Assembly: GCA_030704615.1 (NCBI GenBank)
Contig: CM060732.1
Span: 20,460,001-20,524,000 of the forward strand
Reading direction: 5' to 3'
DNA from: Takakia lepidozioides
Lineage: Eukaryota > Plantae > Bryophyta
Length of the DNA stretch: 64,000 nucleotides
Shown here: positions 20,797 to 60,789 of the stretch, in pieces
Layout: each line of letters opens with the position of its first letter
Numbering within the stretch: the stretch's first letter is position 1
The notes under the pieces: model-generated
What the model saw: the letters and a program-made list of their open reading frames with translations, nothing else
Database searches by the model: none
Told to the model about the DNA's origin: nothing
Position numbers and translations under genes: made by a program

Positions 20797-20831
<35 letters not shown>

Positions 20832-29800: not shown

Positions 29801-32800
29801 AAGTACTCGTCTCGAGGTTGATCTGGAATCTAGAGGTTGTTTTCACGAAGGCCAAGCTGGCTTTCAGCGAAACAGGGGCTGTGTGGACCATATCTTCACT
29901 CTAAGCCAGATTATCCAGGGAAGGAAAAAAGAAGGGAAACCCACTTATGTTTTTTTCTTGGATGTCAAAAAGGCTTATGACACAGTGTGGAGAGATGGTC
30001 TGTGGCTCCGCCTCTGGTCTTGCGGAATCAAGGGAAAAATGTGGAGAGTTGTCCATAACTTGTATGCCCACACCAAAAGCTGTGTCACTGTTAATGGACA
30101 GAAGTCTAACTTCTTTGACATAGACCAAGGTGTAGCTCAAGGATGTACCCTCTCCCCTCTGCTCTTCAATGTTTTCATCAATCAACTCCTCGAGGATGTG
30201 GAACGTGAGGGATTTGGGTTAAGGGTGGGTGATGCCACCTTTCCAGCCCTTATGTTTGCGGATGACTTCGCAGGCATAGGGGAGACTCCTTCCAACCTCC
30301 AGGAATTGATTGATTGCACGAAGAGATACTTTGATCTTTGGGGGCTAGAGGCTAAGGTCAGTAAATGTGCAGTGGTGGCATTCAACGACAGAGGAGAGGG
30401 AGGAAGTGATCTTAAGTGGCAGTGGGGTAGCCAAGAGATCCCAGTCCTCCCTTCCTACACATACCTGGGCGTTGAGTTTTCCTCCAACTGTAACTGGGAT
30501 GCACACATCCAGAAAGTTGTTCAAACTGGCAAGGGCAAAGCGCTGAGTCTCACTAAATTTTTTCACTGCAGAGGGATTAACTCTGAGGTCAAGAAAACCT
30601 TGCTTTGCCGCGTTATTAGACCTGCCTTGGAGTACGGATCTGTTATATGGGTTGATAACTCCAACCAGGCTAAGTCTCTAGAATCCATTCAAGTGGGGGT
30701 GCTTAAGGAGTGTATGTCAGCATGCTCCAAAACAGCCAATGTGGCTGTTCGGGGTGAGTTTGGCATCCCTTCCTTAAGCTCCCGACGAGATGAATTCAAG
30801 GTCAGATGGCAGTTGCAACACATGTCCAACACCAGATACCCTAAGGTTAATCGACTCTATATCTTGGAAACAGGACCGCCCTGTCAAACAGGCTAAGTCC
30901 TGGCAGAAGAGAGTAGAAGAGATTCTCAAGGATCTGAATCTGGACCGGCAAGTCTTGACCTTGCTGGATAAATCTGACTTAGAGACTGTAGTGTCCAAAG
31001 CCATGTCTGTTACCAGCAAATTGTCTGATGCAAATGAAGTTAGGCAGAAAACTTCCCTGAACCTGTTTCCAGTCTGTGACATGGGGGAGGATATCATGGA
31101 TGACCTCAAGGGTCTACCCACTCTCGGCACCAGACAGGGCAGGAAGCCTACCTTTGAACAGTAAACAGAAGCAGAGAGGAAAGGGAGCGTGCAATTGCCC
31201 GTTGTGTGGGCAACCCAAAGACAATATTCATTTTCTGATTCACTGTCCGGGGTACTCTCACCAGAGAGAAGCTCTCCTCCAATCTATCAAGAGAATTGTG
31301 CCTGTACCTCTGTTTACCAACTTTGAAAGTCTCGAGGCTGAGCCAAAAGCCCAGGCCCTTCTGAGGCCTAGTTTTTGGGCAAATCACACATAGATGTGTG
31401 AAGGGATTTCTAGAGGATATCTGGAAATCCCGAATTAATTCTATTTATAAAGGTAAGTCTTACTACCAATGTCAGCCCCTGACAGAGGTAGGTTCTGTCC
31501 CTTTGGTTTCCGCTCAAACGGTCAATGGCCACAAGGCTACGGCAAACAACGTCTTATGAGTACATTCTCTCTCCTTCCCTGTCTTGACCCTGCAGGATAA
31601 ATCTGACTTAGAGACTGTAGTGTCCACTGTAGTGTCCAAAGCCATGTCTGTTACCAGAAAAATTGTCTGATGAAAATGAAGTTAGGCAGAAAACTTCCCT
31701 GAACCTGTTTCCAGTCTGTGACATGGGGGAGGACATCATGGATGACCTCAAGGGTCTACCCACACTCAGCACCAGACTGAAATTTAAACTCAGGGCAGGA
31801 AGCCTACCTTTGAACAGTAAACAGAAGCAGAGAGGAAAGGGAGAGTGCAATTGCCCGTTGTGTGGGCAACCCGAAGACAATATTCATTTCCTGATACACT
31901 GTCCAGGGTACTCTCACCAGAGAGACGCTCTCCTCAAATCTATCAAGGGAATTGTGCCTGTACCTATGTTTACCAACTTTGAAAGTCTCGAGGCTGAGCC
32001 AAAAGCCCAGGCCCTTCTGGGGCCTAGTTACTGGGCAAACCACACACAGCAGGTTGATGCTTGTGTGAAGGGATTTCTAGAGGATATCTGGAAAACCCGG
32101 ATCAATGTTCTTGACCAAGGTAAGTCTTACTACCGACGTCAGCTCCTGACAGAGGTAGGTTCTGTCCCTTTGTGTTCCGCTCAAACTGGGCGCTGGGTCA
32201 ATGGCCACAAGGCTACGGCAAACAACGTCTTATGAGTACATTCTCTCCTTCCCTGCCCCTCACAAAGGTAATGTCTGTTCCCTTTTGTTCTCCCCAAACT
32301 GAACGCGGGGGTCTATGGCCTCAGGCTACAGCAAACAACCTCTCATGAGTTGGGGCAGACATTACCTTTGGCATACAACTTCCCTGAACTTGTCATCAGT
32401 TTGGGACTTGAGTGAGGTCCTAAGGATGATTTGAAGGGCTGACCTACCCTCGGCAGTAGACTGAAATTTAGCTCGGACGGGGAGTCTACCTTTGAACAAT
32501 AAACAGATTCAGAGAAATGAAATGAAATGAAATGGAGCTTTATAACGAGAGAAAAGGGAGATTGTCAATGACTGATGTGCGGGGGACCTGAAGACAATAT
32601 CTCTTTCCTGATATTATGTCTGGGGTATTATCATCAGAGAGCGACCCTGTTCAGGACCATCAAGAACATAGTCCCTGCACCTCTGTTCACCAACTTTCAA
32701 ATCTCGAGGTTGAGCCTAAAGCCCTGGCCGTGTTGGGGTCTAATTGCTGGGCAGCTCACACATAGCAGATTGATGTGTGTTAAGGGCCCTAGAGGAAATC

Positions 32801-33485
32801 TGGAAAGCCCGAACCAATTGTTTATACCAAGGTTGTCCCACTACTGGAGTGAGCCCCTCACAAAGTTAGTGTCTGTTCCCTCTTGTTCCACCCAAACTGG
32901 GCATGGGGTCTATGGTCACAAGGCTACAGCAACAAAGGCATGTGAGTACCATCTCTCTCTCCCCGGGCAAACATCTTGGGTCGGCATAGGATCTTTGCCA
33001 GATGCTTTTGGTCTAACCTCTTATCAATTTTGGTAAGGCAGTATACCATGGTGTCCATGCCCTTGAGGGTATGCTGTAGTCATCTCTTGCAGGGAACAGT
33101 GAGTGGTAGAACTCTATCGGCTTTTTGTGTAATGTTTCTTTCTTTCTTTCTTCCTTTACCCTCTTTCTTCCCCTCTCTATCAATTCCTTTTGACTTCCTT
33201 GTGCCGTCCAGCAGGGATAGCACTGTGGTTTAATGTGTTTTAATAGCGTTTATGGTTCATCACTGTGTTTCAATTGTCATGGACAAGACTGTCTGAATTT
33301 CTATACATCAGAATGTATGTATGTGTGCATGTGTAAATTCTTGCATCTCTAGAGATTCGTATCTATTTAGACGAATGTGTTTGTGAATGCAGAACCGGGT
33401 GAAAAGGAGGTGGTTAGGAATGGTAAGCACCAAGCGTCGGCTAATGGAGCAACTTCAGTTCTTGGAGGCCCAGACCAGGTTGTGA
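19555..33485 (+). CDS. 12-exon gene: FIST N-terminal-like domain (with a large insertion) fused to a LON peptidase substrate-binding (PUA-like) domain
   Basis: Phase-consistent GT-AG exons: 19555-20776, 21579-21896, 22246-22303, 23218-23357, 23721-23802, 24033-24516, 24784-24891, 25902-25987, 26517-26559, 26809-26913, 27171-27254, 33393-33485 (TGA). FIST-like motifs: PTLAVVFIS, PFIGCVSEGLV, LVLCMGHLPG, LSTVFPKSCRAGA, GVVGLAV. LON-N motifs: LPLGFFDAVLFPGWSMPFHIYEPCYRMM|VRQCLEQGKPFG..IGTVA..GIRRFRL..VEYFDD..SFAVG..KRRWL..STKRRL. The start codon is uncertain. Confidence 0.85.
20800..21170. repeat. (CT)n microsatellite plus the second copy of the dispersed repeat seen at 60-450
   Basis: Colinear similarity to 60-450; lies in intron 1 of the FIST-LON gene. 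Confidence 0.7.
27410..31580 (+). mobile_element. LINE (APE endonuclease + RT + C-terminal CxxC..H..C finger), near full-length ORF2, frameshifted, in the last intron of the FIST-LON gene
   Basis: APE motifs ATFNFSG, QETW, GDFNARVG, IVDYI, SDH. RT motifs GPDGI, QAGF, FLDVKKAYD, GVAQGCTLSPLLF, FADD, YTYLG. C-terminal CPLCGQPKDNIHFLIHC. Frame breaks near 29464, 29745, 30810 and 31135. Ends ..ttatgagtacattctctctccttccct. Confidence 0.95.
31581..32965 (+). mobile_element. Three further 5'-truncated copies of the same LINE, head-to-tail (31581-32254, ~32260-32350, ~32375-32965)
   Basis: Each repeats the 3' region and ends in the aaggctac(g/a)gcaa...tgagt terminus. The first copy is near-identical to 30950-31580 and the last is more diverged. 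Confidence 0.9.
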
Positions 33486-35539
33486 GACTTGGGCCTTCAG
33501 GGTTTTGACAAGCATTTCATGCTGGAGCATGACGGATAGTTTCAGTTAGAGCCCCCATTGATCTAGCCATTTTTTGCTATTTTCTGCAGATGTCTCCTTT
33601 TGGTAACCTTGCCAAGTAATGCAACGGATCCATTTTACTCCCACTAAGTCTTGAAACCTCCTTGTGCAACCAACAGGTGAGGTCGTCTGCAATTGTCTCA
33701 AGAAGAAATCTTTCTATAATGGTCTCTTTTGTGGCACAGATTGGGTCCAACCCTTGACGGATAGACATGAATGCAGTTTGTTAGTGGGCGTATGATTTGG
33801 AACAGGCGGCAGATTAGGCCTATCCACTTACAAACTTATTAGCCCTTGAATCATATTCAAGAGCCTATTTAGCTTGAGCTCTAGTGCCTTTGAAATCCCG
33901 AAATACTGGCGGCAGGACAAGCTCAAATATAAGCAGCTATCTTGATCCATGTCTAGGGCAGGGGCTCACCGTACCTATTTGTGCTGCTGCTGCCTCCAAA
34001 TGCAAACACACATACATTGAACAAATATTTGACTATGTGCAGTTTGCAATGCTACAGATGAGGTAACAGAATACCTGCAAGTGCAAGTGGGGTTGATGGC
34101 GCTTGACCTTGAAGAGAAATTCTACAGCTCCCTTTAAATTTCAGTGTGATGCTTACAGTGTGCCGCACACCTACAGTTATTTGCGAGTGCTAATGGAACT
34201 TTAATGTTATTAGTTTTCATCATGCACCATTCATTCACCTTTATTGTGCTTCAACAGGTGCGCCCCTTCCACCTTGAAGATTGAAACACGGGATTTTGGC
34301 TGTCCCAAAAACTTGTTCCCACCAATGTGGCATCCATCCTTTCAATGTTTTGGCAATCACACAAATACCCTTGCACCAAAATGACTGCTGAGCTTTAATT
34401 GGGCCCTTCAAAGCACCCACGTGTGCAGTCTACTAACTGCCCCATTTCATTTTGCGCCCTTTGCTCGCTTCTCATTCAGGGTGTTTTTCCATCCACATTC
34501 ATCCATGGAAAGTATTCCGTGGATGAAAATGGCTACACACATGCAGCACCTGCAGACCACGCACACACCAGAGTCAATGAATAGTCCCTTAAGAACCCTC
34601 CTCCCTCACATACAACAGGCACTGAACACGCAATGAAGTAACCAAAGCCTACACCTTGCCTGTATCTGGTGGGTAACACGCCAACAATCCCCCCAGGCTC
34701 CATGACAATGGGACAGTAAAAGTAAGTCCTCCTATGGCACCTTTGAACACAACTGCCAAATAGAGGAGGAATGAAGGTACTGATGCACATGGGCACTGCG
34801 GTCAGCTTCAAAATACTCGGTGATGACATGGCCTACAAAACGTGGCAACGATGATGACAGAGATGATGTATTTTTTCAGGCAATCCGGGCGGCTTCAGAA
34901 ATATGCGTTGATGATGTGGCCTACGGAATGTGGCAAGGATGACGTCAAAAACATTTTCATTTTTTTGGGCAATCTGGGCAGTTAAGAAAAACATTGATGA
35001 CATGGCCTACGAAACTGACAACGATGATGTGGCGACAAAACGTGAAAATATATTCAATCAATTAATGGTCCTAATTTATAATAGAGATTTCAAGAAAAAA
35101 AAAAAAAAACTCCTCCTAGAGCTGATGTAACTGGTAGCCACTTCATTATATGGCTACTGCTCTTTGTCAAGGTGGGTTCCATAAAGGGAAACATTTAAAA
35201 TATTTAAACATAGAGGCTAAACACATTTTAGCGACCACCGAAGGTCTGAAGCTAGTTTAGCGTAGAGCAGGAATAGGGTGCCATAGTGCCACGTTTTGTC
35301 GCCACGTCATCGTCGCCACGTTTCGTCGTCAAATGTTTTCAATCTGCCCAAACTGCCCGCCGGAAATACACCAATAGAAATTGCCGCGCCAACGTTTTCG
35401 GAACTGCCCGAAATGCCCGGATCTTGATCTGCGTTTTCCGCCATCGTTCACCTTGCAAGCTGCAAGCTCTCAACGAATTGAGGAAATCCATGCTGAGCTG
35501 AAGACTTGCTGAAGAGATTGTCTTGGTAGATGAAGGATC

Positions 35540-35620
35540 AAGCAAATGATGGGGAAGGGTGTCGCTTTTTCTTAATGTACGATCTGAAGAAGTTTGTCCA
35601 TCCTGCAAAGGTGGGCTCTT
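35540..35620 (-). pseudogene. Possible decayed ubiquitin-like domain fragment (related piece at ~43310-43395)
   Basis: The minus strand reads LQDGQTSSDRTLRKSDTLPHHL here and LHDGKTSSHGTLSKSHTLRLRL in the second piece, reminiscent of ubiquitin [20 protein letters not shown]. Confidence 0.3.
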
Positions 35621-35957
35621 GGCTCCTGTCAGTACCATGATTTGGTATTCTTCCTGATGTTTGCAAGGTTCTTGGGAGAGTCAGCTTGGTCTTAGCAGGC
35701 CGTGTTCAATCTCTACCTGCTCAGATGCACCGTGGTGGTTCTCACAGATCAATCCGACATTACCTGACTACAGACACAAACAGCACACACAAGAGGTCCT
35801 TTTGGGTTGATGGTCGGTCAAATCCTCCATGGGTCATGACACAAGGTCAAGGACAGTCTGGTGAGGGCACCTTCTTCTTCGACCTATTTCGGCTTGTTCC
35901 ATTCAGATCCTGGGTGCACTCCAGATTCCACGAAAAAGTCACTGCGCACAGCTGCAT

Positions 35958-36061
35958 TGGGGAATGCCCTATCAGGTATCCGTCAACTTACTCCAGGGGC
36001 TCGAATGTGGGAATGCCCTATCAGGTATCCGTCAACTTACTCCAGGGGTTCGAATGTGGGA
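35958..36061. repeat. ~49-bp tandem duplication
   Basis: gggaatgccctatcaggtatccgtcaacttactccagggg(c/t)tcgaatgt occurs twice. Confidence 0.9.
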
Positions 36062-36593
36062 ACTGGTGAAAGTGATCTGCATGATGAGGATAACATTTGT
36101 GCCATGAATCTCACCCGCATCCACTGGGCTGATTGTTGTGAAAGTCCATGCGTAGACTAGAATCAACATGTTCAATGTTGAGATGCCCCCGAGTTTCCTG
36201 TCACCAACTAGCATACCTGGCAATCTGTAATGACCAATAGAATCCATTTTTCAGCATTTGAAAGGAGAGGCATCCATCTCTGTGGCCCACAATTCCACTA
36301 GAAATTGCTCTACTACTTTCAACAATTCACTGAGCTTCCAGCCAATCATGATAGGAGGGATACAAATTGCTCACATATACAGGGGCTCAGATGGTCCAGG
36401 GCTGGCTTCATATGCGCTGAACTCTAAGCCAAATTACTTGGGGTAAAATTCTTATATATAGAGGCCACATTGGAGGGTTGCAGATGGTCCAGGGCTGGCT
36501 ACTCCACCCGCAGTCTCTACAATTGCCCACTTCGTCATCTCACTTCCACCTCTGTCTCTCTCATTCTTAACTCCCTCCTGACCCTCACAGCTA

Positions 36594-36730
36594 CCTGAAG
36601 ACAATATTCAATTTTTGACTCACTGTGCTGGGTACTCTGACCAGACACCCTCTTCAAATCCATTCAAGGATAAACTTGTGCATGTACCTTTGTTTACCAA
36701 CTTTGAATATCTCGAGGCTGAGCCAAAGCT
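36594..36730 (+). mobile_element. LINE 3' fragment (same family as 27.4 kb)
   Basis: cctgaagacaatattca..cactgtgctgggtactct..tttaccaactttgaatatctcgaggctgagccaaagc matches ~31215-31350. Confidence 0.8.
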
Positions 36731-36879
36731 CAGCCCCTTTCACACTCCAGTAGTGGGACTTACTTTGATAGAGCAATTCGTTTAGGCTTTCCAGATTTCC
36801 TCTAGAAAGCCCTTCTTACAAGCATGAATCTGCAGTGTAAGAGCTGCCCAGAAATTAGAACCCTGACATGGCTGCCAGA

Positions 36880-37560
36880 GCTTGTGGGTTGGACTCCAGA
36901 CTTGCATCCTTTATGCTCCCACATTTTGCATGTGTCCACAAGGGTATTTTCTAAATTAATATATGGAGCAATCCCAACTCTTATATTGTCCGCATGGACC
37001 TGCTTGCCTCTTTCCAGGGCTTGTATACTGGCACATGCATTGAGAGCACAAATGAATGTGACCCTGTCCGGGGTCACCCATTCCCATTGCATTTGCTCAT
37101 AGATTTTTAAGGCCTCATTGGGATGCCCATGTTTCACACATCCTGCCATCAGCATTGTCCAAGTGACTGTATCTCGGTCAGGCATCTCCTCAAACATTTG
37201 TTGGGCATCCACCGTGCTCCGACACTTGGCATACATGTTGACAAGGGTGTTGCCGACAAAGGTGTTTGGCTTGAATCCACTTTGGATAATGTGGGCATGC
37301 ACCTGCTTTCCCTCTGCCAGGGTTTTCATGTTGATGCACCTTTGTAAGAGACAGATATACATATTGTAGTCTGCCCGGATGCGTCTAGAATGTGCAGCAC
37401 CTCTTTCATTTTTCCCTGCTTACACAGTGCCGACACAATCTCATGCCTGCCAGACAAATTGTTGACTTCCTGTCTTGGCCCTTTATTGTAGAAGTGGTTA
37501 TAGTGGATTTGCCACACCAGCTGCCTATTTGATGTCCAACAAACAGTTGTATCCAATGCA
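36880..37560 (-). pseudogene. N-terminal part of a PLS-class PPR gene, frameshifted and truncated
   Basis: LCKQGKMKEVLHIL / YICLLQRCINMKTLAEGKQVHAHIIQSGFKPNTFVGNTLVNMYAKC..DTVTWTMLMAGCVKHG..PDRVTFICALNACAS. Confidence 0.9.
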
Positions 37561-38259
37561 AACCTGGCACCCTGCATGACTAAACTTCCAGTTGAAAGCA
37601 TTGTGTTCAAAATATCTACAAACTTCAAAATATTTCATAAGGATAGGCCTTTCAAATTTTCTAACAGGGTACATACTTCCTGGATTGATTATCTGCAATT
37701 GACTCTTTAAAAGATTTGTCTTGCTCATTTTAAGTTGAGGATATTGCTCATTCTGCATCTTGCTTTCCTTTGGTGAGTTCCTGAGAAGTTCTGAGCTTCA
37801 CACTGTCCTGGTAATCCAGGCCCATTTGGCCCTGCATGACAGATGGGGCCACAACGGAAGAGGGCAACTCCTTAGTTTCTTGCGAGAGTGGCAGCAATAT
37901 TCCCACTGCCAGTTCTGTTCTGTTCTGTTGTGGTCTTCGTCATAGCATCTCTCCGTTTTGGTTTTATATTATAGTCCTATGCCCATGTAGCTCTCCTAGG
38001 AAGCTAATAAGTTTAACCTACTTACGAAGGGCATAGCTCTATTCCAGAGTTTGTTGAGCCTGTCACAGGCTGTCATTGTCAGCTGCTAGCAGCAAGGCAA
38101 GGATGTATGCATGATTTGTGCAGAGGCATGGATAGCTGAAGGAGTAGGGATAGAGTGTGGGTCCAGATTCATCCAAGGGGACCGGACTTGAAGCTCCAGA
38201 TTACCTATGATTCCCTGTTGGTCAATAGCTACAAGGAACCTGCATGGGTAGATGGTCAA

Positions 38260-39268
38260 CTAAAGGCACATTTGTTTGCATTTGCAGTGCGTGTGCAAGC
38301 CTGGCAGCCCTGGAAAAGTGGAAAGAGGTCCATGGTGACATCGTCAAATCTGGAACTGTACCAGATGTCATTCTGAACACTGCCCAACGCGATGCTTGCA
38401 GGGTATACACAGCAGGGGCACGGGATGGAGACTTTGGAGACCTATGAGCAAATGATGTGCGAAGGGGTGAAGCCCGACCACATCACGTTTGTGTGTGTTT
38501 GCAGTGCGTGTGCAAGCCTGACTGTCTGGAAAATGGCAAAGAGGTCCATGGTTGCATCGTCAAAGCTGGAATTGTACCAGATGTCATCCTGAACACTACC
38601 CTGGTGGACATGTATGCCAAATGTGGGAGCATTGAGGATGTGGAGGGAGTTTTCCACACTATGGCTGAACGAGATTTGGTGTCATGGAATGCCATGCTTG
38701 CAGGGTATGCACAGCAGGGGCGTGTGATGGAGGCCTTGGAGACCCATGAGCAAATGATGTGCGAAGGGGTGAAGCCCGAGCACATCACGTTTGTGTGCGT
38801 TTGCAATGCGTGTGCAAGCCTGGCAGCCCTGGCAAAGGGCAAAGAGGTGCATGGTTGCATCGCCAAAGCTGGAATTGTACCAGATGTGATTCTGAACAAT
38901 ACCCTCGTAGACATGTATGTCAAATGTGGGAGCATTGAGGATGTAGAGGGAGTGTTCAACGGTATGGCTGGACGAGATTTGGAACGCCATGCTTGTAGGA
39001 TATGCACAGCAGGGGCAGAGGAATTGTACCAAATGTCATTCTGGAATTTTCTCTTTGCCACCACAGTGAGAAGCTGGCCATTGGTTTTGGGCTGATTAGC
39101 ACAACCCCTAGGACATCTCTCCGTCTCATCAAGAATCTTTGAGTGTGTGGTGACTGCCACACCTCCACCAAATACATCTCAAAGATTGCTGGCAAGCAAT
39201 TGTTGTACGGACGCTAACCACTTCACCACTTTGAAGATGGGATTTGTTCTTGTGGTGATTACTGGTGA
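38260..39268 (+). pseudogene. PLS-PPR-DYW pseudogene 1 (E domain and start of DYW deleted)
   Basis: About 2.5 P-L-S triplets with frameshifts, then [14 protein letters not shown]...IKNL*VCGDCHTSTK...CSCGDYW* (stop 39266-39268). Confidence 0.92.
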
Positions 39269-39760
39269 AAGGATGTTTTCTCCGAAAGATGCAAGTGTCT
39301 TGCTTCATTCATTGACCTGTGTAGCTACTCAGACCATCCACCATTTCCTGAGAATATTGACCATCATGTACTGTTCAGTGCATTTCCTATCCTAATTCTG
39401 GGTTTGGGTGGTGGAGCTTCTCCAAGGCTTGAAGATGGAAGTGAATACAAATTTTAATGAGCTTGATGAGAGGCGCTGCCCTGTGCACAAGTTTGTTCAG
39501 CATCTTAAATTTGGACATGTTTGTTTGTTTCTCGTGATGTGTCTTTGGATGGAGCCCTTGTCGAACTTGCATGAATATTGTCAAAAGCTAGCCTTAACCC
39601 ACCAAGATCCAATCCCATGGTGGCTGCTTGAAAGTTCATACAGTGAATGTAAGGGTATTTGGGTATGTTGTTATTGGTTGATGCAGCTTGTGAAAATTGA
39701 ACATTGACATGCAGATCCGCCATTTTTCTTCCAGAAAAAAACAAAACACGGGATCTCTGC
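39269..39760. repeat. Post-DYW 3' flank, duplicated at 42123-42661
   Basis: Near-identical sequence through to aaaacaaaacacgggatctctgc; the second copy has a different ~80-bp segment at ~42205-42290. Confidence 0.9.
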
Positions 39761-42122
39761 CCGACCACATCACATTTGTGTCCATTTGCGATGCGTGTGC
39801 AACGCTGGCAGCTCTGGAAAAGGGCGAAGAGGTCCATGGCGACATTGTCAGAGCTGCGATTGTACCTAGTGTCATTCTGAACAATACCCTCGTGGACATG
39901 TATGAAGGGAGTTTTTGACAGTATGGCTGAATGAGATGTGGTGTCGTGGAGGGTGATGATTGCAGGATATGCACAGCAAGGGCGCGGGATGGAGGCTTCG
40001 GAGACCTATGAGCAAATGACGGGGAAGGGGTGAAGCCCAACCGCCTAACGTTTGTTTGCATTTGCAATGCGTGTGCAAGCCTGGCAGCTCTGGAAAGGTG
40101 CAAGGTGGTCCACGGTGACATCGTCACATCTGGAATTGTACCCAATGTCATTCTGAACACTGCCCTGCTGGACATGTATGTCAAATGTGAGTGCATCGAG
40201 GATGCAAGGGGAGTTTTCGTGGCTGAACGAGATGTGGTGTTGTGGAGGGCGATGATTGCAGAATATGCACAGCAAGGGCGCGGGATGGAGGCTTCGAGAC
40301 CTATGAACAATTGATGTGCGAAGGGGTGAAGCCCAACCGCATAACGTTTGTTTGCGTTTGCAATGCGTGTGCAAGCCTGGCAGCCCTGGAAAGGTGCAAT
40401 GAGGTCCATGGTGACATCGTCAAAGCTGGATTTGTACCAGATTTCATCCTGAACACAGCCCTGCTGGACATGTATGTCAAATTTGAGTGCATCGAGGATG
40501 CAAAGGGAGTTTTCGACAGTATGGCTGAAAGAAATGTGGTGTCATGGAGGGCGATGATTGCAGGATATGCACAGCAAGGGGGGGGATGGAGGCTTCGGAG
40601 ACCTATGAGCAAATGATGGGGAAAGGGGTGAAGCCCGACCGCATAACGTTTGTTTGCATTTGCAATGCGTGTGCAAGCCTGGCAGCTCTGGAGTGCAAAG
40701 TGGTCCATGGTAACATCGTCACATCTGGAATTGTACCCAATGTCATTCTGAACACTGCCCTGCTGGACATGTATGTCAAATGTGAGTGCATCGAGGATGC
40801 AAAGGGAGTTTTCGACAGTATGGCTGAATGAGATGTGGTGTCGTGGAGGGCGATGATTGCAGAATATGCATAGCAAGGGCGCGGGATGGAGGCTTCGAGA
40901 CCTATGAGCAATTGATGTGCGAAGGGGTGAAGCCCAACCGCATAACGGTTGTTTGCATTTGCAATGCGTGTGCAAGCCTGGCAGCTTTGGAAAGGTGCAA
41001 TGAGGTCCATGCAGGTGACATCGTCAAAGCTGGATTTGTACCAGATGTCGTCCTGAACACTGCCCTGCTGGACATGTATGTCAAATGTGAGTGCATCGAG
41101 GATGCAAAGGGAGTGTTCGACAGTATGGCTGAAAGAAATGTGGTGTCGTGGAGTGCGATGATTGCAGGATATGCACAGCAAGGGGCGGGATGGAGGCTTT
41201 GGAGACCTATGAGCAATTGATGTGCGAAAGGGTGAAGCCCAACCACATCACATTTGTTTGCGTTTGCAATGCTTGTGCAAGCCTGGCAGCCCTGGAAAGG
41301 TGCAATGAGGTCTATGGTGACATCGTCAAAGCTGGATTTGTACCAGATGTCATCCTGAACACTGCCCTGCTGGACCTACATGTCAAATGTGAATGCATCG
41401 ATGATGCAAAGGGAGTGTTTGACAATATGACTGAACGAAATGTGGTGTCGTGAAGGAAGACGCTACTTCGATTCCCTGAGTCAAGGTCATGGTGTCACCC
41501 CGCCAGTGAAGCACTTTGGCTGCATGGTGGACCTTCTGGACGTGCGGGACAACTACATGAGGCAGTGGACCTGATTAATAAATGCCAATCAATCCAGATG
41601 TTGTGGTGTGGAAGGGCTTGCTTGGTGCTTGCAGAATCCATGGCAATGTGGAGATGGCTGAATGTGTGCCAACATCTATCCTCAAGTGGGATGAACAGGA
41701 TGCCGCGACTTATGTGTTGCTATATCAATATCTATGTTGCAGCTGGCAGGTGGGATGATACTGCAAAGGTGAGAAGAATGATGAAGGTCAGAAGGGTTAG
41801 AAAGGAGCCAGATCACAGAATTAAGGAAATCCATGCTGAGCTGAGTAGATTGTCTGGGCAGATGAAGGAGGCGGGGTATGTGCCTGACACACGCTTTTTA
41901 CTGCATGATGTGGAGGAAAGGAATTTTCTCTTTGCCACCACAGTGAGAAGCTGGCCATTGGTTTTGGGCTGATCAACACGACTCATCAAGAATCTTCGAG
42001 TGTGTGGAGACTGCCACACCTCCACCAATCAAAGATTGTTGGCCGAGCAGTTGTTGTATGGGACGCTAACTACTTTCCACCACTTTGAAGATGGGATTTG
42101 TTCTTGTGGTCATTACTGGTGA
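39760..42122 (+). pseudogene. PLS-PPR-E-DYW pseudogene 2
   Basis: About 5.5 tandem ~300-bp triplets (PNRITFVCVCNACASLAALE / VPDVILNTALLDMYVKC / ERNVVSWRAMIAGYAQQG). These are followed by E-domain remnants, KEPDHRIKEIH (internal deletion), a frameshifted H-SEKLA, IKNLRVCGDCH and CSCGHYW*. Many frameshifts and stops. Confidence 0.92.
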
Positions 42123-43689
42123 AAGGATGTTTTCTTGGAAAGATGCTAGTGTCTTGCTTCATTCATTGATCTGTGTAGCTACTCAGACCATCCACCATTT
42201 CCTGATAGTGGGGTCTACCCGGCATAGGTGGGAAGTCAGCCCACAATTGCACTTGACTGAAGGGGTGATTTTTGACTGATTCTGGTGCTGTCCTAATTCT
42301 GGGTTTGGGTGGTGGAGCTTCTCCAAAGCTTGAAGATGGAGGTGAATACGAGTTTTAATGAGCTTGATGAGAGGGGCAGCCCTGTGCACAAGTTTGTTCA
42401 GCATCTTAAATTTGGACATGTTCGTTTGTTTCTTGTAGTGTGGCTTTGGATGGAGCCCTTGATGAACTTGCATGAATATTGTCAAAAGCTAGCCTTAACC
42501 CACCAAGATCCAATCCCACGGTGGATGCTTGAAAGTTCATATAGTGAATGTAAGGGTATTTGGGTATGTTGTTATTGATTGATGCGGCTTGTGAAAATTG
42601 AATGTTGAAATGCAGATCCGCCATTTTTCTTCCAGAAAAAAACAAAACACGGGATCTCTGCATGTAACATCGTGGGGATGACCCACCCCTTTTTTTGTGA
42701 AAAATTGAACATAGTTCTCAGAATTCGTCGCTAGTAGTGCGAAGCAATGCGAAGCCCTAGTTCTAGCGACGATCGAAGGTCGGAAGCTAGTTTAGCGTAG
42801 AGCAGGAATAGGGTGCCTTAGTGTCACATCATCATCGCCACATTTCGTAGACACGTCATCGTAGCCATGTCATCGTCGTCGCCAAAATTTTATATCTGCC
42901 CGGACTGCCCGCCCGAAAATCCCAAAGCGCCAAGTTTTTTCGGAACGTGCCCGGATTGCCCGGTTCTTGAAGTTCTTGAACTGCAGGAGCTCTGCGTTTT
43001 CCGCCATCGTTCACGTTGCAAGCTGCAAGCACTCAACAGTCTCGCTGCTCAATGCAAGCCGTGGCTTTTCCCTCAACGATCTTTGATCACGTGGAATATA
43101 ATGTTGGCAGGATTTACCGAGCATGGGATGCTTTGGAGACCTATGAGCAAATGAGCGCGAAGGGGTGAAGCCCAACCACATCACGTTTGTTTGTGTTTGC
43201 AATGCGTGTGCAAGCCTGGGAGCCCTGGAAAAGGGGAAAGAGGTCGGATTTTCGAGCACAAACGTCTACCTTGGAGCACGGAGCAGAGCTGGCATGAGTT
43301 TCTTAAACATCCTTCACGATGGTGGGACAACCGCAATCGCAAGGTGTGACTTTTGCTTAATGTACCATGTGAAGAAGTTTTTCCATCGTGCAGATGCTCA
43401 ACGATCTTTGATCACGTGGAATATAATGTTGGTCGAACCCTCCTTGGGTGAAAGCGGAGCTAGCGACCTTTATACCTTGTCAAACATATTCTGCTTATGA
43501 TTCTACTGTTGATGTACACCTCGGCGCTCAATGTCAGGAATCCAAAAGGTATTGTCTTTGAGATTTCCAACTAAAACAGATGGAATTGCTACAAAATGTT
43601 TTCAAAACATTTTTAAGAAACCCGCACTAGAGATCATTCATTTGAGTATTTGAGTATTTTGGATCGGGCTCAATTGTTTGCTGGACATC

Positions 43690-46600
43690 TGACTGCTAAG
43701 AGGGGTAGGACCTTCACTATGACCACTGCTTTGGAAAGAGGACCAAGAGAGGAAGTCAACAAGGGCTTTCCGGGCACTTGTGGGTATGTAAGGACCCTAT
43801 GTAAGGCAGGACAATTGAAAGAGCTGCACATTTTGCACCAACAAGGCATTGTGGCCAATTCAAATACTTACATCTGTCTCTTGTAGGAGTGCATCAACCT
43901 GAAAAAACTAGAAGAGGGAAAGCAGGTGCATGCCCATATTATTCAAAGAGGACCCAAGCCAACCATCTTTCTACTCAACAACGTTATCAACATGTACATC
44001 AAGTGCGGGAGCCTGGTGGACGCACACCAAGTATTCCATCAAATGCTGAATGAGACATTCATATATGGACGAAGATGATGGCAGGTTGTGTCAAGCATGG
44101 ACATGTTGAGGAGGCTCTCAAAATCTATGAGCAATTGCGACACGAAGGCATGACACCAAACAGGGTCACATTCATTTGCGTCCTCAATGGTTGTGCCAGC
44201 ATAGGAGCCCTGGAAAGGGGCAAAGAGGTTCATGCTGATATCCTTAAAGCTGAAATTGCATCTGATATCATTTTGGAGAATACCCTTGTTGACAAGTATG
44301 CCAAATGTGGGAGCATGAATGATGCACATCAAGTGTTTGATAATACGGCTGAACGGAGTGTGGTGTCATGGAGTGCGATCATTACTGGATGTGCCCAGCA
44401 TGGTCATGGTATTGAGGCCCTGCATCTCTTTGAATGCATGCAACAGTAGGGCATGCAGCCAAACAGTATCACTTTTATATCTCTTCTCTCTGTGTGTATT
44501 CATGTGGGCCTAGTGGATGAAGGCCTTCACTACGGTTGTCTGTCTCTTGCTTAAGTGCATCAAGATGAAAGGTCTGGAAGCTGGAAAGCAGGTGCACACT
44601 CACATTATCCAAAGTGGATTCACACCAAGGATGCGAAGGGTTTCAACACTATGGCTGGACAAGATGTTGTGTCGTGGCACGCGATGCACAGCAGGGACGT
44701 GGGATGGTGGCTTTGGAGACCTATGATCAAATGATGGGGGAAGGGGTGAAGCCCAACCATTGTGCGCATTTGCAAGCCTGGCAACCCTGGAAAAGGGCAA
44801 AGAGGTGCATGGTTGCATCGTGAAAGCTGGAATTGTACCAGATATCATTCTGAACAATACCCTCGTGGACATGTATGCCAAATGTAGGAGGCATTTCAGC
44901 AGATTCAGATACGTTTGTCTGTCTCTTGCTTAAGTGCATCAAGATGAAAGGTCTGGAAGCTGGAAAGCAGGTGCACACTACATTATCCAAAGTGGATTCA
45001 CGCCAAGTGTTTTTCTCCTCAACACCCTTGTCAACATGTCAAACCTGGGAGCTCTGGAAAAGGGGAAAGAGGTCCATGGTGACATCGTCAAAGCTGGAAT
45101 TGTACCAGATGTCATTCTGAACACTGCCCTGGTGGACATGTATGCCAAATGTGGGTGCATTAAGGATGCGAAGGGAGTTTTCAACACTATGGCTGAACGA
45201 GATGTGGTGTCATGGAAGACGATGCTTGCAGGGTATGCACAGCAAGGACGTGGTATGAAGGCTTTGGAGACCTATGATGAAATGATGGGGGAAGGGGTGA
45301 AGCCCGACCACATCACATTTGTGTGCATTTGCGATGCGTGTGCAAGCCTGGCAGCTCTGGAAAAGGGCGAAAGAGGTCCATGGCGACATACACTGCCCTG
45401 CTGGACATGTATGTCAAATGTGAGTGCATCGAGGATGCAAAGGGAGTGTTCGATAGTATGGCTGAATGAGATGTGGTGTCGTGGAGTGCGATGATTGCAG
45501 GATATGCACAGCAAGGATGCGGGATGGAGGCTTTGGAGACCTATGAGCAATTGATGTGCGAAGGGGTGAAACCCAACCGCAACACATTTGTTTGTGTTTG
45601 CAATGCGTGTGGCAGCCTAGGAGCTCTGGAAAAGGGGAAAGAGGTCCATGGTGACATCGTCAAAGCTGGATTTGTACCAGATGTCATCCTGAACACTGCC
45701 CTGGTGGACATGTATGCCAAATGTGGGTGCATGAAGGATGCGAAGGGAGTTTTCAAATGGCTGAACAAGATGTGGTGTCGTGGAACGCGATGCTTGCAGG
45801 GTATGCACAGCAGGGGCGTGGGATGGAGGCTTTGGAGACCTATGAGCAAATGATGGGGGAAGGGGTGAAGCCCGACAACATCACGTTTGTGTGCGTTTGC
45901 AATGCGTGTGCAAGCCTGGCAACCCTGGAAAAGGGCAAGAGGGGCATGGTGCATCGCCAAAGCTGGACCTGTACCAGGTGTGATCCTGAACACTGCCCTG
46001 GTGGACATGTATGCCAAATGTGGGAGCATTGAGGATGCAGAGGGAGTGTTCAACAATATGGCTGAACGAGATTTGTTGTCGTGGAACGTGATGCTTGCAG
46101 GATCTGCACAGCAGGACGTGGGATGGAGGACTGGAGACCTATGAGCAAATGATGGGGGAAGGGGTGAAGCGCGACCACATCACGTTTGTGTGCGTTTGCA
46201 GTGCGTGTGCCCTAGAAAAGGGCAAAGAGGTGCATGGTTGCATCGCCAAAGCTGGAATTGTATCAGATGTGATTCTGGACAATACCCTCGTGGACATGTA
46301 TGCCAAATGTGGGAGCATTGAGGATGCGGAGGGAGTGTTCAACAATATGGTTGAACGAGATTTGGTGTCATGGAACGCCATGCTGGCAGGATATGCACAG
46401 CAGGGCGTGGGATGGAGGACTTGGAGACCTATGAGCAAATGATGGCGGTAGGGGTGAAGCGCAACAACATCAAGTTTGTGTGCGTTTGCAGTGCTTGTTC
46501 AAGCCTGGCAGCCCTGGAAAAGGGCAAAGAGGTGCATGGTGACATCCTCAAAGCTGGAATTGTATCAAACGTCATTCTGGACACTGCCCTGGTGGACATT

Positions 46601-47400
46601 TATGCGAAATGTGGGTGCATTGAGGATGCAAAGGGAGTATTTGACAATGTGACTGAACAAAATGTGGTGTCGTGGAATGCGATGATCGCAGGATATGCCC
46701 AGCATGGTTGTCATAGGGAGGTCCTGCAACTATTTGAAGGAATGTAAAAGAACGGCTTGAAGCTGGATAGTATCACCTTATCTGTGTTCTATCTGCATGC
46801 AGCCACACTAGCCTACTGAATGAAGGAAGACGCTACTTCGATTCCCTGAGTCAAGATCATGGTGTTACTCCGACAGTAAAGCACTTTGGCTGCATGATGG
46901 ACCTTCTTGGACGTGCAGGACAACTGGATGAGGCAGTGGACCTGATTAATAAAATGCCAATCAATCCAGAGGTTGTGGTGTGGAAGGCCTTGCTTGGTGC
47001 CTGCAGAATCCATGGCAATGTGGAGATGGCTAAACGTGCAGCAACATCTATACTCAAGTGGGATGAACAGGATGCCACGACCTATGTATTGCTATCAAAC
47101 ATCTATGCTGCAGCTGGCAGGTGGGATGATACTGCAAAGGTGAGAAAAATGATGAAGGTTAGAGGGGTTAGAAAGGAGCCAGGTCGCTTCGGCATTGAGG
47201 TTGGCAACAGGGTGCACACCTTCGTTGTAGATGACAAGTTGCATCCCAAAATTAAGGAAATCCATGCTGACCTGAGAAGATTGTCTAGGCAGATGAAGGA
47301 GGTAGGGTATGTGCCTGATACACGCTTTGTATTGCATGATGTGGGGGGGGAGGAAAAGAAATTTTCTCTTTGCCACCACAGTGAGAAGGTTTTGGGCTGA
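43690..47400 (+). pseudogene. Composite PLS-PPR-E-DYW pseudogene 3 (PG-box type; DYW truncated after HHSEK)
   Basis: An N-terminal PPR block (43690-44520) is followed by about 6 disrupted triplets. Then comes an intact E region MMDLLGRAGQLDEA..WKALLGACRIHG..YVLLSNIYAAAGRW..KEPGRFGIEVGNRVHTFVVDDKLHP..GYVPDTRFVLHDV..LCHHSEK. Confidence 0.92.
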
Positions 47401-47649
47401 TCAGCACGACCCCTACGATGCCTCCTCCTCCACTGAATTTACAATTGCTATCAAACATCTATGCTGCAGCTGGCAGGTGGGATCCATCTGAGTAGCAGAA
47501 TGTTCTCTCTGCATTTTACTAGCGCCTAACAATAAGCTGTATGTCCCATCACATTTCACATGAGCTTGTTCTTCTTTGTACACCAATTTGACACATAGAA
47601 TAGTTTATATAACTACCTGTTATGTGCTACCCTCTTTCTCAAAAAGATG

Positions 47650-47940
47650 AGAGGAAAGGAGATTGTCAATGCCTAATGTGAGGGTGGCCTGAAGACAATA
47701 CCCATTTTCTGCTACAATGTCCGGGGGTATTCTCATCAGGCTGAGCCTGAAGCACTGACCCTCTCTGAACTTGTTTCCAGTCTGTGACATAGGAGAGGCC
47801 ATCATGGATAACCTCAAGGGTTTACGGCACTAGACTGAAATCTAAACTCGGGGCAGGAAGCCTACCTTTGAACAACAAACAGATGCAGTGAGGAAAGAGG
47901 GATTGCAATTACCTGTTGTGTGGGCAACCTGAAGACACAA
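47650..47940 (+). mobile_element. Rearranged LINE 3' fragments (same family)
   Basis: ctgaacttgtttccagtctgtgacat..atcatggataacctcaaggg..actagactgaaatctaaactcggggcaggaagcctacctttgaac matches ~31700-31880. Confidence 0.8.
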
Positions 47941-49399
47941 GGATAGCATTGTGGCCGTGCCCCCAGTCTGGGCGGAACAAGAGCAAACCTTTGTGAGGGA
48001 CTCACTCCAGTAGCAATATCCATCAACATGACTCGAATATTCATCAATGTGAGTAATACGAGCACACTTAAAACGGAAGTTGGGGGCTTAGGAAATAAGG
48101 TCTGCGTCACTGATAATGTTGCCTTGTCTGTACTTCTTAGTTCTTACGGATCAAAGTCCTTCAGAACAGTCTAATCTAGGAAGATAGTAACAGAAACTGG
48201 ATAAAGAACCTGTATGGTAGTTTAGAGCAACTCTTACTTTGTGTAATTATGAAAAGAACATTATGAAGGCCAGCCTTGAGATCCTAGTAACGAATGAAGA
48301 AAGAAAGTAGGTGGGTCTCTTTTGAACATGTTCATGAAAGCTCATAGAACAAACTACCTTCGAAGAGAAATATCCATATCCACATCGGTACTTTTTATCA
48401 AGACAGATTTTGTTCAAAACAATAGTATTTGTCACTGAGCTTATGTAGGCAACTATTTTTTTTAAGAATGCATCTTTGAATATACGGTCGTTATCTATTA
48501 TATCAAAATGCTAATGTCCACCCTAAACAATAAAAACTTGGGCATGTGTATAACTTCAAGTAATATGGAAAAACAAAATGTTAAAGCGGAGAGGCAGACA
48601 AAATAAACGATGTACTCCAGAACAAACATGCATTAAATAAAAGACCACCAAGATTTTTCATGAAACCGTGGCATTAAATAAAAGTCCAAACTATTTGAAA
48701 TCTACACCAATTGCAAATAAAGATGAAAAAAAGATATCATATAAACAACATTCATAATCCAAATCCAAATCTGCTTGTTGTATCAAAATGAGCCACAATC
48801 ATTACACTGGTCAAATGAATCTTGAAATGAAATTGAGAGAAAAAAAATACAGAAAAGAGAAAAATACAGAAAAACAGAGAAATACATAATAGGGGTTCCA
48901 CTCCCACACTTTGTGGGCATAGATAGAGGTAGCTACATCAAACAATGAAATACAGAGATGTGACATACAGAGATGTAAGACCATGGGATGACCCCCCCCT
49001 TTTTGTACCAATTGAATGTAGTTCTCAGAATTCGTCGCTAGGAGTGCGGAGCAACGCGAAGCCCTAGTTCTAGCGACGACCGAAGGTCGAAAGCTAGTTT
49101 AGCGTAGAGCAGGAATAGGGTGCCATAGTGCCACATCATCGTCACCTTGTTTTGTTGCCAGGTCATCGTAGCCAGGTCATCGTCGTCATCAATTTCTTTG
49201 GAACCTGCCCGAAATGCCCGAAAAGCAGCGCGGGGAAGGACCGCCCCCGCGTGCTCGAGCTTTTGAAAGAGGATCGAGAGAGGGAGTCCACAATGCCTCC
49301 TCTAGTACTTCTGCGCATGTGAAGATGCTTTGTGAGGTAGGCAAACTAACAGAGGTGAGGGCACCTTCTTCTTCGACCTATTTGCATATTGAATTCTGC

Positions 49400-51802
49400 A
49401 AGTTAGGTCGTTGGGTAGATGGTCAACTGGAAACAGCAGCGGCAGCGGCACAAATGATAGATGCAAATGAGCGTCATAGTGTTTGGCGTCACACCTGCCG
49501 CTCTCATTTGCTTATAGATCTCAAAGGCCTCCTTCTTAGACCCATGCTTGGCATATCCTGTCACAATATATTCCACATGAACACATGTCATTCAGGCATC
49601 TTGTGCCCACACTACCACCCTTGACATAAATGTTGAGAATGTTATGGTGCAAAAAGATGTTCGGCTTGAATCCACTTCTAATGATGTGGGCGTGCAGTTG
49701 CTTTCCCTTTGCCAAGCCTTTCATCAAGTCCATGGAGAGCAGGGTAACGAAACACACTAGCCCGGATTCTGGACCGAACGAGGTTAGGTCCACCACCTTT
49801 CCATCATTGCACTTGTCCCCTTGAAATTGTTGTACTTGTTTTGAAGCTGCTTCTGGACATTGGCTGGAACATCTTGGTTGTGGAGAGACTTGTGGAAGGA
49901 TATGGCTCAAGGTCTCCAAAGTCTCCATCCTGCACCCTTGCTGTGCATATCCTGCAATCATCGCACTCCCCGACACCACATCTCGTTCAGCCATACTATT
50001 GAACACTCATTTGCATCCTCGATGCACCCACATTTGCCATACATGTCCACCAGGGCAGTGTTCAGAATGACATCTAGTACAATTCCAGCTTTGACGATGT
50101 CACCATAGACCTCTTTGCACTTTTCCAGGGCTGCCAGGCTTGCACACGCATTGCCAAATGCAAACAAATGTGATGTGGTTGGGCTTCAACCTTCCCCCAT
50201 CATTTGTTCATAGGTCTCCAAAGCCTCCATCCTGCGCCCTTGTTGTGCATATCCTGCAATCACCACATCTCATTCAGCCATACTGTCGAACACTCCCTTC
50301 ATACATGTCCCTGACGGTATTGTTCAGAATGACATTTGGTACAATTGCAGCTCTGACATATTGCCATAGACCTCTTTGCCCTTTTCCAGAGCTGCCAGGC
50401 TCGCGTTCCATGACACCACATCTAGTTCAGCCATAGTGCTGAAAACTCCTTAATGCACCCACATTTGACATATGTCCACCAGCAGTGTTCAGAATGACAT
50501 ATGGTACAATCAGCTTGGACGATGTCACCATGGACCTCTTTCCCCTTTTCCAGAGCTCCCAGGCTTGCACACGCATTGCAAACACAAACAAATGTGATGT
50601 GGTTGGGCTTTACCCCTTCACGCAGAATTTGCTCATAGGTCTCCAAAGCATTCCTACCACACCCATGCTTGGCAAATCCTGCCAACATTATATTCAACGT
50701 GATCAACGATCGTTGAGGCATTCTGTTGAACACTTGGTGAGCATCCATGATGCTCCCGCTCTTAACATACATGTTGACAAGGGTGTTGAGTAGAAAAACA
50801 TAATCCACTTTGGATAATTATGTGAGTGTGCACCTGCTTTCCAGCTTCCACACCTTTCATCTTGATGCACTTAAGCAAGAAACAGACATAGGTATCTGAA
50901 TCTGCTGAAATGCCTCCTTGGTTTAAAGTCTGTAGAGCCTCAGTAAGTCTGCCTGCCTCACAAAGCATCTTCACATGCGCAGAAGTGCCAGAAGAGGCAT
51001 TGTGGACTCCCTCTCTTGAGAAGTTGTGGTCATCGTTGAGGTGCCTGATTTTATCAACTGTGCCGCTGCTGCTGCGGCTTCCAGTTGACCATTTACCCAT
51101 GCAGGTTTCTTGTAGCTATTCATCCACAGGGAATCATAGGTAATCTGGAGCTTGAAATCCGGCCCTCTTGGATGAATCTGGACCCACACTTTCTCCCTGC
51201 TCCTTCAGCTATCCATGCCTTTGCACAAATCATGCGTACATCCTTGCCTTGCTGCTAGCAGCTGACAATGACAGCCTAGAATTATTCCAGCAAACACCCC
51301 AACCCTACTTCAATTCCAGCTTTGACGATGTCACCATGGACCTCTTTCCCCTTTTCCAGAGCTCCCAGGCTTGCACACACATTGCAAACACAAACAAATG
51401 TGATGTGGTTGGGTTTCACCCCTTCGCGCAGAATTTGCTCATAGGTCTCAAAAGCATTCCTACCACACCCATGCTTGGTAAATCCTGCCAACATTATATT
51501 CCACGTGATCAAGATCGTTGAGGCATTCTGTTGAATGCTTGGTGAGCATCCATGATGCTCCCGCCCTTAACTTACATGTTGACAAGGGTGTTGAGTAGAA
51601 TAACATTTGGCGTGAATCCATTTTGGATAATTTGAGTGTGCACCTGCTTTCCAGCTTCCAGACCTTTCATCTTGATGCACTTAAGCAAGAGACAGACATA
51701 GGAATTTGAATATGCTGAAATGCCTCCAAGAAGTCTGTAGTGCCACTGTAAGTCTGCTTGCCTCACAAAGCATCTTCACATGCGCAGAAGTGCCAGAAGA
51801 GG
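49400..51802 (-). pseudogene. Series of minus-strand PLS-PPR fragments, inverted relative to the 38-47 kb arrays
   Basis: LCEAGRLTEALQTL..YVCFLLKCIKMKG.EAGKQVH, NTLVNMYVKSGSIMDAHQVFNRMPQRSLIT, PNHITFVCVCNACASLGALEKGKEVHGDIV. The same N-terminal block occurs twice (~50520-51000 and ~51310-51802). Confidence 0.9.
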
Positions 51803-55740: not shown

Positions 55741-56749
55741 GTCAGTTGATGGAAACTACATTCTGGGCACTGTTGGGGCTAGGATGCGGCTCGGGCAACT
55801 GCCAGCTAAGTTTTACTGTTGCAGATGCACGGTTACTGGCTAGTCATGATTGTGTCAGATGAATTTAGCTCTGGTTGGTGGATGGAAGAAACAACCTATG
55901 TGGGCTAGTCATGCTCGTCATATGCATTTAGAAAGTCCCGTTTCTTGGATGCAGATTTTCCAGCTTTACGAAATGATTTTGGTGAGAGATGGGCTAATGC
56001 TGGTAGGCAATTCGTATGGGGCCAAGACAGAGTGCTACAAAGTCTAACTTTTTCTCTTCTTTGGTAAGAAGGAAGGGCCAACATCTAAAAGGCCCTGCTA
56101 CTTTCCTCATGTAGTCCTAAGTGCGAGTATTAAAGCAGCAGTTGTCCAGTCAGAACTGCTATAATGTGCATGTAATGCTAGGCAACCAAACACATGGACC
56201 TTACATTCCATATTCTTGTTACCTCAGTCTCAAATATTCTCCTAGTAACCGAGGCACTATTTGCAACTTTCTGAGTTATATCATAATTTTGTAACTTTAA
56301 CAATAAAACACAAGCTATGTGAAATAGGGCAAAGGACAGAGGAGAAGTGCCTTTTGTGAGAGCGTCTAGTACACCACTTGCTTGCGGATACTTTTGGAAT
56401 GCTTCCTTCTGTGATTTACTTGCCTACACACACATGTCATCATCTGATTGGTGTGATTTCCTTGTTCGATATACATTTGTGTCCAACAACATGTTTGTTT
56501 GTTTTTTTCTTCTTGATCTTGCCATATGACACAACTGTATTTGTTTTCTAGTACCTCTAAAGTGTCATGACAGACATGACAGGTTTGTTATAGTTTCTTT
56601 GTGGGTACCAGGGATGTCTGCCTGTCTCAGGTAGTGGCCACATCACAAACAGATGTGAGCCTGGACAACACCACCACAATCTCAGCATTGACTGGTGAAT
56701 TACTGGTGGTGTCCAAGTGGAATTGTAAGTGCTGAGAACTTCGGACTAG

Positions 56750-60411: not shown

Positions 60412-60643
60412 ACCTTATCAAGAAAATTACTTTCTTTCTGGATTTCGTATATCTTCTTCACTGCATCCTTGATCTTCTTCTTGTCAGCCCGCACATCCAC
60501 AATGAACACCAACGTGTTGTTGTCCACAATCTTCCTCATGGCAGACTCTGTCGTTAGGGGATACTTGAGGACCTCATAATGATGAAGCTTATTCCTGGCA
60601 AGGGGCTGAGGCGAGGATACTTGGGCGTACGGGCTCTCTTCAC
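60412..60643 (-). pseudogene. RPL23A: 60S ribosomal protein L23a (uL23) exon fragment, frameshifted
   Basis: [12 protein letters not shown] / [53 protein letters not shown] / KKV..LIR followed by a GT donor. No other exons are recognisable. Confidence 0.9.
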
Positions 60644-60789
60644 CTGTGTACAAACCATGAATACAACCTCAGCTTTGCTGCTAGCAGCTGAAGCAGCTGA
60701 GACTGACGGCGTGAAGTTCTTCCAGCAAACACCCCAACCCAACCTATAGTAACATATCAAAATCACTACAAAACACCATAGATCGACCA

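Follow-up and report, generated by a model that had tools for sequence, protein, structure and literature searches.

A decayed head-to-tail array of probable Helitron2-type elements with PPR-DYW pseudogene cargo in Takakia lepidozioides

Positions 35226 to ~51800 of a 64,000-nt stretch of Takakia lepidozioides DNA probably constitute an old, decayed head-to-tail array of a non-autonomous family of Helitron2 (HLE2)-type rolling-circle elements, a reading of the sequence to which we assign a probability of roughly 65%. The stretch, called the window below, covers positions 20,460,001-20,524,000 of the forward strand of contig CM060732.1 (assembly GCA_030704615.1), and all coordinates are window positions. 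The array consists of two complete units of 7535 and 6307 bp, followed by the start of a third. These lengths agree with the values of 7.5 and 6.3 kb given in an initial reading of the same DNA (hereafter, the original prediction). Copies of the element ends and of the array were searched for within the window, and all results concern this single locus. HLE2 elements, head-to-tail arrays, and gene capture are already known; what is new here is the family itself and its PPR-DYW cargo.

The units meet at a composite junction of ~250 bp. The original prediction of a repeated bipartite junction is borne out by blastn, which aligns two copies (42662-42911 and 48973-49220) with 83%-86% identity, and the DNA directly upstream of these copies (42500-42661 versus 48800-48972) is unrelated. 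Another sequence, at 35226-35359, aligns solely to the right-hand half of the junction, from positions 42761 and 49068. With an nhmmer profile of the three left parts, this free copy of the left end was found to reach 35474, its counterpart in the first junction being 43037. The third copy (35226-35474) begins 0-2 bp before the 5′ inverted-repeat arm, which is the second arm of the junction, an observation made at one free end. If a 250-bp repeat were truncated at random, such a coincidence would have an estimated chance of ~3%. A free left end within a T-run had been predicted. The left half is indeed present alone and starts at the predicted terminus, but the T-run in CACATTTT, which precedes this one free end, consists of just four T. 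Together, the sequence features of the junction are best explained if the right end of one element of Helitron2/HLE2 type abuts the left end of the next.

Features of the junction were identified by direct reading and pattern search. The right-end (3′) inverted-repeat arm, TTCGTCGCTAG (42724-34 and 49031-41), is followed by 28 nt that include two copies of the heptamer GCGNAGC and close in CCCTAGTT. Next come the 5′ arm, CTAGCGACGA (42763-72 and 49070-79), a hairpin, a 33-mer, and a series of short repeats. The 5′ arm is the inverse of TTCGTCGCTAG. In both junctions the arms match perfectly as inverted repeats over 10 bp, or over 11 bp if one mismatch is allowed, and the two ends meet at CCCTAG-TT. 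The window contains ~9 other perfect inverted repeats of this kind (≥10 bp, loop ≤40 nt), or about one per 7 kb. The 5′ hairpin, CGACC-GAA-GGTCG, shares the last three bases of the 5′ arm. It is perfect at 49077-89, includes a G.T pair at 42770-82 (CGATC-GAA-GGTCG), and has a 4-bp stem in the free copy. The arms, the perfect hairpin, and the simple repeats had all been described in the original prediction, and each was recovered by direct reading, pattern search, or Tandem Repeats Finder (TRF).

The left ends are conserved unevenly. The 33-mer is 100% identical across all three (35250-82, 42785-817, and 49092-124), and none of 20,000 column shuffles yields an invariant block as long as the 34 columns found beside the hairpin. 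Outside this block, the remainder of the left ends is 12%-18% diverged. The short repeats that follow are of GCCAC/GTC composition and include a 13-nt GCCACGTTTCGTC-type repeat. On the right-end side, GCGNAGC occurs twice in the 26-nt interval from the 3′ arm to the end of the element in both junctions (GCGAAGC at 42739-45 and 42749-55; GCGGAGC at 49046-52 and GCGAAGC at 49056-62). Within these motifs the junctions differ by one base (A to G), located at the free N position. About 10 occurrences of the heptamer are expected in 128 kb (both strands), and thus two within one 26-nt interval are far from chance. The GCGNAGC heptamer has been described as an extraordinarily stable DNA mini-hairpin (PMC13037366). 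The 28-bp stretch between units as a whole carries three differences between the two junctions.

This arrangement can be compared with the published definition of Helitron2 elements (PMC3627910). Such elements have asymmetric terminal inverted repeats (TIRs) of 8-15 bp. The 5′ arm lies 0-2 bp inside its end, and the 3′ arm precedes a hairpin and is set back 20-30 bp from the other end. In addition, a 5′ hairpin uses part of the 5′ arm, the element starts with a 5′ T, and insertion occurs after T-runs. In the array, the inverted repeat is 10-11 bp long, and the one free copy begins matching at TT(C/T)TAGCGAC, 0-2 bp ahead of its arm. From the last base of the 3′ arm (42734 and 49041) to the end of the element (42760-62 and 49067-69) there are 26-28 bp. 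The 5′ hairpin shares bases with the 5′ arm, its folding energy by itself not being significant, and two GCGNAGC motifs, whose stability is taken from earlier work (PMC13037366), lie between the 3′ arm and the end in both copies. The element begins with T. Every structural feature of the definition that is readable from sequence is therefore present (PMC3627910), as the original assignment to Helentron/Helitron2-type ends had anticipated. HLE2 elements have been documented in land plants (PMC11417382), including Helitron-5_SMo of Selaginella (PMC3627910), and head-to-tail arrays are known for Helitrons (PMC4067079, PMC5148889).

Several observations weigh against this assignment. As the original prediction had stated, no RepHel gene is visible: no stop-free stretch of at least 60 amino acids in the 64-kb window matches Helitron_like_N or PIF1. 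All three copies of the ends lie in one array, and within the window there is no dispersed copy and no empty site. The two halves of the junction had been expected to be found apart from each other; the left half is found alone, but the right end never is. A profile search detected no right end after unit 3 in the remaining 15 kb to the window end, and the right boundary of the array is missing. Termini and cargo have diverged alike (82%-92%), so the array could have grown by unequal crossing-over after a single insertion. The predicted folding energies of the ends (ViennaRNA) are only weakly better than those of shuffled sequences (z of -1.4 to -1.8), and the case for the ends thus rests on motif anatomy rather than on computed stability. 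In addition, the first base of the right-end module was used twice as a rearrangement breakpoint, a fact for which the HLE2 model does not account.

Parts of the left end also recur without a terminus. Positions 129-265 of the left-end model are found at 57610-57775 and 58044-58109, and positions 67-160 recur three times in inverted orientation at 34791-35044. These recurrences indicate that the left end belonging to the transposon itself is probably just the first 60-130 bp, and model positions 129-265 are probably cargo or a separate module. Scans of the region with Rfam and tRNA models were blank and give no support for an origin like that of short interspersed nuclear elements. A metagenome scan with the invariant 33-mer gave 0 matches, whereas the inverted-repeat pattern gave 10, all of them unrelated long hairpins without the other features. 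No matching ends were present in the supplements of the Helitron2 study (PMC3627910).

The similar divergence of spacer and cargo could also be explained by plain tandem segmental duplication of a PPR-DYW pseudogene and its spacer, with no transposon involved and with the inverted repeat and hairpins being incidental. All copies are at one locus, and the PPR arrays clearly undergo unequal crossing-over, as their near-identical PLS triplets attest. Furthermore, the units are homologous over most of their length; the original prediction that the DNA between junctions differs was incorrect, the E-DYW parts being 92% identical. However, a history of duplication alone makes coincidences of four features: an outer array boundary that falls within 0-2 bp of an inverted-repeat arm, arm spacings that fit the Helitron2 definition point for point, GAA-loop hairpin motifs on both sides, and the invariant 34-nt block. 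It also sits poorly with the unrelated DNA directly upstream of the two junctions. We regard this explanation as unlikely, though it is the strongest competitor to an HLE2 array.

Retro-copying has been put forward to explain the expansion of PPR genes, which lack introns. The repeat of 250-376 bp might be viewed as the long terminal repeat (LTR) of a non-autonomous retroelement whose cargo is an intronless PPR-DYW gene acquired by retro-copying. The locus would then read LTR-internal-LTR-internal-LTR, the first LTR having lost its 5′ part. The repeat starts with (A)TG, and the boundary between positions 42661 and 42662 acts as a discrete breakpoint, as a boundary between polypurine tract and U3 might. 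However, no primer-binding site for tRNA-iMet, the one primer tested, is found near any copy when up to two mismatches are allowed, and the sole perfect site in the window (62145-56) belongs to a gypsy element. No purine tract directly precedes the repeat, its right boundary varies between copies, and the first copy is truncated at the inverted-repeat arm. An LTR origin is for these reasons very improbable.

Hardly credible at all are cut-and-paste units of the "Pack" type bounded by 10-bp TIRs (CTAGCGACGA...TCGTCGCTAG), with the 28 bp between units serving as flank: the two arms do form a perfect inverted pair, and TAGCG fits the YARNG start of hAT-like elements, but the 28-bp spacer is conserved (three differences) and structured by mini-hairpin motifs, and therefore belongs to the element, and the 8-bp flanks are not duplicated (CCTAGTTC versus GGAGTGCG for unit 2; CACATTTT versus GTAGTGCG for unit 1). 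As predicted, no target-site duplication typical of such families is present, since flanks outside the arms differ at each length compared (2, 3, 8, and 9 bp).

Two other candidates were considered and rejected. CTAG and TC, as at the ends of a canonical Helitron (HLE1), are readable in CCCTAG-T-TC at the junction, but the free end is preceded by T rather than A, and inverted repeats are present. Likewise, 42662-43037 could be one short inserted element of which 35226-35474 is a 5′-truncated copy, but its right boundary varies between copies and there is no duplication or tail at the edges.

If the locus is an HLE2 array, each unit would comprise a left end of ~130 bp, a PPR-E-DYW gene with ~540 bp of 3′ flank, and a right end of ~100 bp. 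According to the model published for such elements, the left end would be nicked and one strand peeled off by a RepHel transposase whose gene lies elsewhere. Peeling would stop at the right end, as marked by the 3′ arm and the mini-hairpins. Read-through of this stop, or re-insertion beside an existing end, could then yield units joined from right end to left end with TT alone between them. We infer, rather than observe, the mobility of the family, its transposase partner, and the way in which the array was built.

The domains of the cargo were assigned with Pfam and a local profile, which recovered the PPR, E, E+, and DYW domains expected from the predicted PLS-PPR/DYW arrays. Unit 1 opens with the free left end (35226-35474, + strand), in which TTTT and a degenerate 5′ arm, TTAGCGACCA (35228-37), are followed by the 4-bp-stem hairpin, the 33-mer, GCCACGTTTCGTC repeats (35288-328), and an interior module. 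Its cargo contains two successive gene remnants. The first part of the cargo (35475-39760, +) begins with a DYW-start fragment (35475-537), a fragment resembling a long interspersed nuclear element (LINE; 36590-906), and an inverted PPR fragment (36903-37562, -). The first remnant (38255-39760) is a PPR array (38255-39040) fused directly to a DYW C-terminal fragment (39044-265) and its 3′ flank (39266-760). The second part (39761-42661, +) is a fuller PPR-E-DYW copy, in which an array of near-identical PLS triplets (39761-41456) leads to a frameshifted E/E+/DYW region (41467-42132) that ends in HYW and a stop at ~42132. The ~530-540 bp of 3′ flank that follows, to 42661, duplicates 39043-39760. 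The unit closes with its right end at 42662-42762 (+), which carries both GCGAAGC motifs and CCCTAGTT.

Unit 2 starts at 42763 with a left end (42763-43037, +) that has the hairpin with the G.T pair, the 33-mer, short repeats, and the interior module. Its cargo (43038-48972, +) consists of a frameshifted PPR array of 3.7 kb (43126-46840), an E/E+/DYW region (46837-47391) that is cut off right after the HSEK motif, a LINE-like fragment (47649-48013), and unassigned DNA (48014-48972). The right end spans 48973-49069 (+). Unit 3 is represented by a left end with the perfect hairpin, the 33-mer, and short repeats (49070-49260, +), and the rest of the unit (49261-51802, -) contains inverted, frameshifted PPR arrays.

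The gene copies in the array are pseudogenes. Both complete units carry the same PPR-E-DYW gene, with arrays built from the same PLS triplets, and all PPR arrays switch reading frame every 100-500 bp. When the E-DYW parts of units 1 and 2 are compared, the first, second, and third codon positions carry 13, 11, and 19 substitutions, respectively, and 13 codon changes are synonymous versus 26 non-synonymous. The copies have diverged as neutral, unconstrained DNA since the units split. Because the cargo is frameshifted and drifting neutrally, the locus shows the amplification of dead gene copies and not the creation of editing factors. In a protein collection that does not include this genome, the E-DYW open reading frame (ORF) has no full-length match above 63% identity, and the ORF adjoining the left end has no relatives.

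Other gene fragments had also been predicted in the units. They are present, but both (36590-36906 and 47649-48013) match the 3′ part of a LINE at 27.4-33.0 kb and are more likely to be nested insertions than captures.

The cargo has been rearranged internally. PLS triplets in the arrays at 39761-41456 and 44118-46840 recur every 296-305 bp with 86%-90% DNA identity. In our judgement the repeats of ordinary PPR genes are far less uniform, and the triplets seem to have been amplified in the manner of a satellite inside the pseudogenes. The 3′ flank of the DYW region is present in duplicate within unit 1 (39043-39760 and 41920-42661), with the last 370 bp being 94%-98% identical. This duplicate ends at the boundary between 42661 and 42662, the latter being the first base of the right-end module, where the junctions start matching; the same base has thus been a breakpoint twice. 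At the boundary between 39760 and 39761, a 2-bp GC microhomology links the 3′ flank to the interior of a PPR motif.

The window contains additional repeats and genes near the array. The three inverted copies at 34791-35044 (-) are arranged in tandem and correspond to the ~90-bp short-repeat section of the left end. Between them and the free left end, which starts 180 bp further downstream, is an AT-rich stretch with an A15 run (35095-35109). Downstream of the array, a 1.9-kb element (56736-58670) is bounded on both sides by 203-bp inverted repeats that are 97% identical. It contains the two copies of the left-end interior part (57610-57775 and 58044-58109) and no PPR sequence.

The LINE-like element upstream of the array (27389-33036) has ORFs for an Exo_endo_phos endonuclease and an RVT_1 reverse transcriptase, and a second, fragmentary copy (54008-55700; 91%-95% identity) lies downstream. 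A Ty3/gypsy-type retrotransposon starts at 62132 and runs off the window at 64000; its perfect tRNA-iMet primer-binding site (62145-62156) is followed by an ORF with gag, zinc-knuckle, and aspartic-protease domains. A stop-free stretch at 60375-60668 (-) matches ribosomal protein L23 (uL23; Pfam E-value 2e-08) and represents either an exon of an RPL23A-like gene or a processed fragment of one. An ORF of 430 amino acids at 19552-20841 belongs to no Pfam family, and its one distant relative among 5.8 billion proteins is 33% identical.

The numbers of PPR-DYW genes differ greatly among land-plant lineages. A concrete, testable mechanism for their multiplication would be provided by a rolling-circle element with an entire PPR-E-DYW gene as cargo. 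A full-text literature search for Helitron together with DYW returned no relevant paper, and none was found that proposes a rolling-circle route for PPR-DYW expansion. With its dead, drifting cargo, this locus offers no support for a role of the family in building the repertoire of functional PPR-DYW genes. We think it improbable that the HLE2 family has been a genome-wide vehicle that copied and recombined still-working PPR-DYW genes, thereby adding expressed editing factors to the large family of this lineage. The terminal sequences needed for asking this genome-wide question are now in hand. Few HLE2 elements have been described in land plants, and the array would also extend this set by a well-defined non-autonomous family. 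Since the element has multiplied solely dead copies at this locus, the immediate value of the finding lies in repeat annotation: such arrays should be masked as transposon cargo and should not be counted as PPR genes.

Maize and other plants have non-autonomous rolling-circle Helitrons that copy pieces of host genes, mostly as pseudogenes. The units described here are probably similar carriers of host gene pieces. In contrast, the maize-type elements are canonical, with 5′ TC, 3′ CTRR, an A/T target, and no inverted repeats. Gene-fragment-carrying plant Helitrons have been reviewed previously (PMC5148889, PMC4067079).

The closest structural parallel is to Helitron2 elements such as Helitron-5_SMo of Selaginella and the non-autonomous Helitron-1N1_CRe (PMC3627910). 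Both they and the array have short asymmetric TIRs set equally far from the respective ends, begin with T, and carry hairpin sequences, one of which draws on the 5′ arm while the other lies beyond the 3′ arm. Helitron2 elements insert next to T-runs, and the one free left end of the array follows four T. The locus differs in being an array with PPR-DYW cargo and no RepHel in the window, and the likeness of its ends to Helitron2 was established by description. FoHeli1 and FoHeli2 of Fusarium oxysporum (PMC5148889) also have a stem-GAA-stem 5′ hairpin that overlaps the inverted repeat, which is ~12 bp long with its 3′ arm tens of base pairs from the end. As in the array, their ends are T-rich, and joined ends resembling the junctions here were detected as a circle junction. 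However, these fungal elements are autonomous, 5-6 kb in length, and recently active, whereas the plant units are non-autonomous and decayed, and their 3′ hairpins are 7-nt motifs.

Non-autonomous partners of Helentrons, the HINE/DINE-1 elements (PMC4067079), resemble the array in having subterminal inverted repeats, a palindrome close to the 3′ end, and internal repeats of the short tandem or microsatellite kind. They also tend to occur in arrays, and their target is T-rich, as are the four T before the single free end here. These elements are short and gene-free, whereas the units here are 6-7.5 kb long and carry a gene copy. Finally, HLE2 families of land plants have been identified with HELIANO, for example HelenSM92 of Sphagnum (PMC11417382). 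Those families are defined from RepHel genes, and their reported cargo domains do not include PPR or DYW. By description, they have in common with the array a land-plant host and HLE2-type ends, and TT insertion sites and short terminal inverted repeats are reported for them (PMC11417382).

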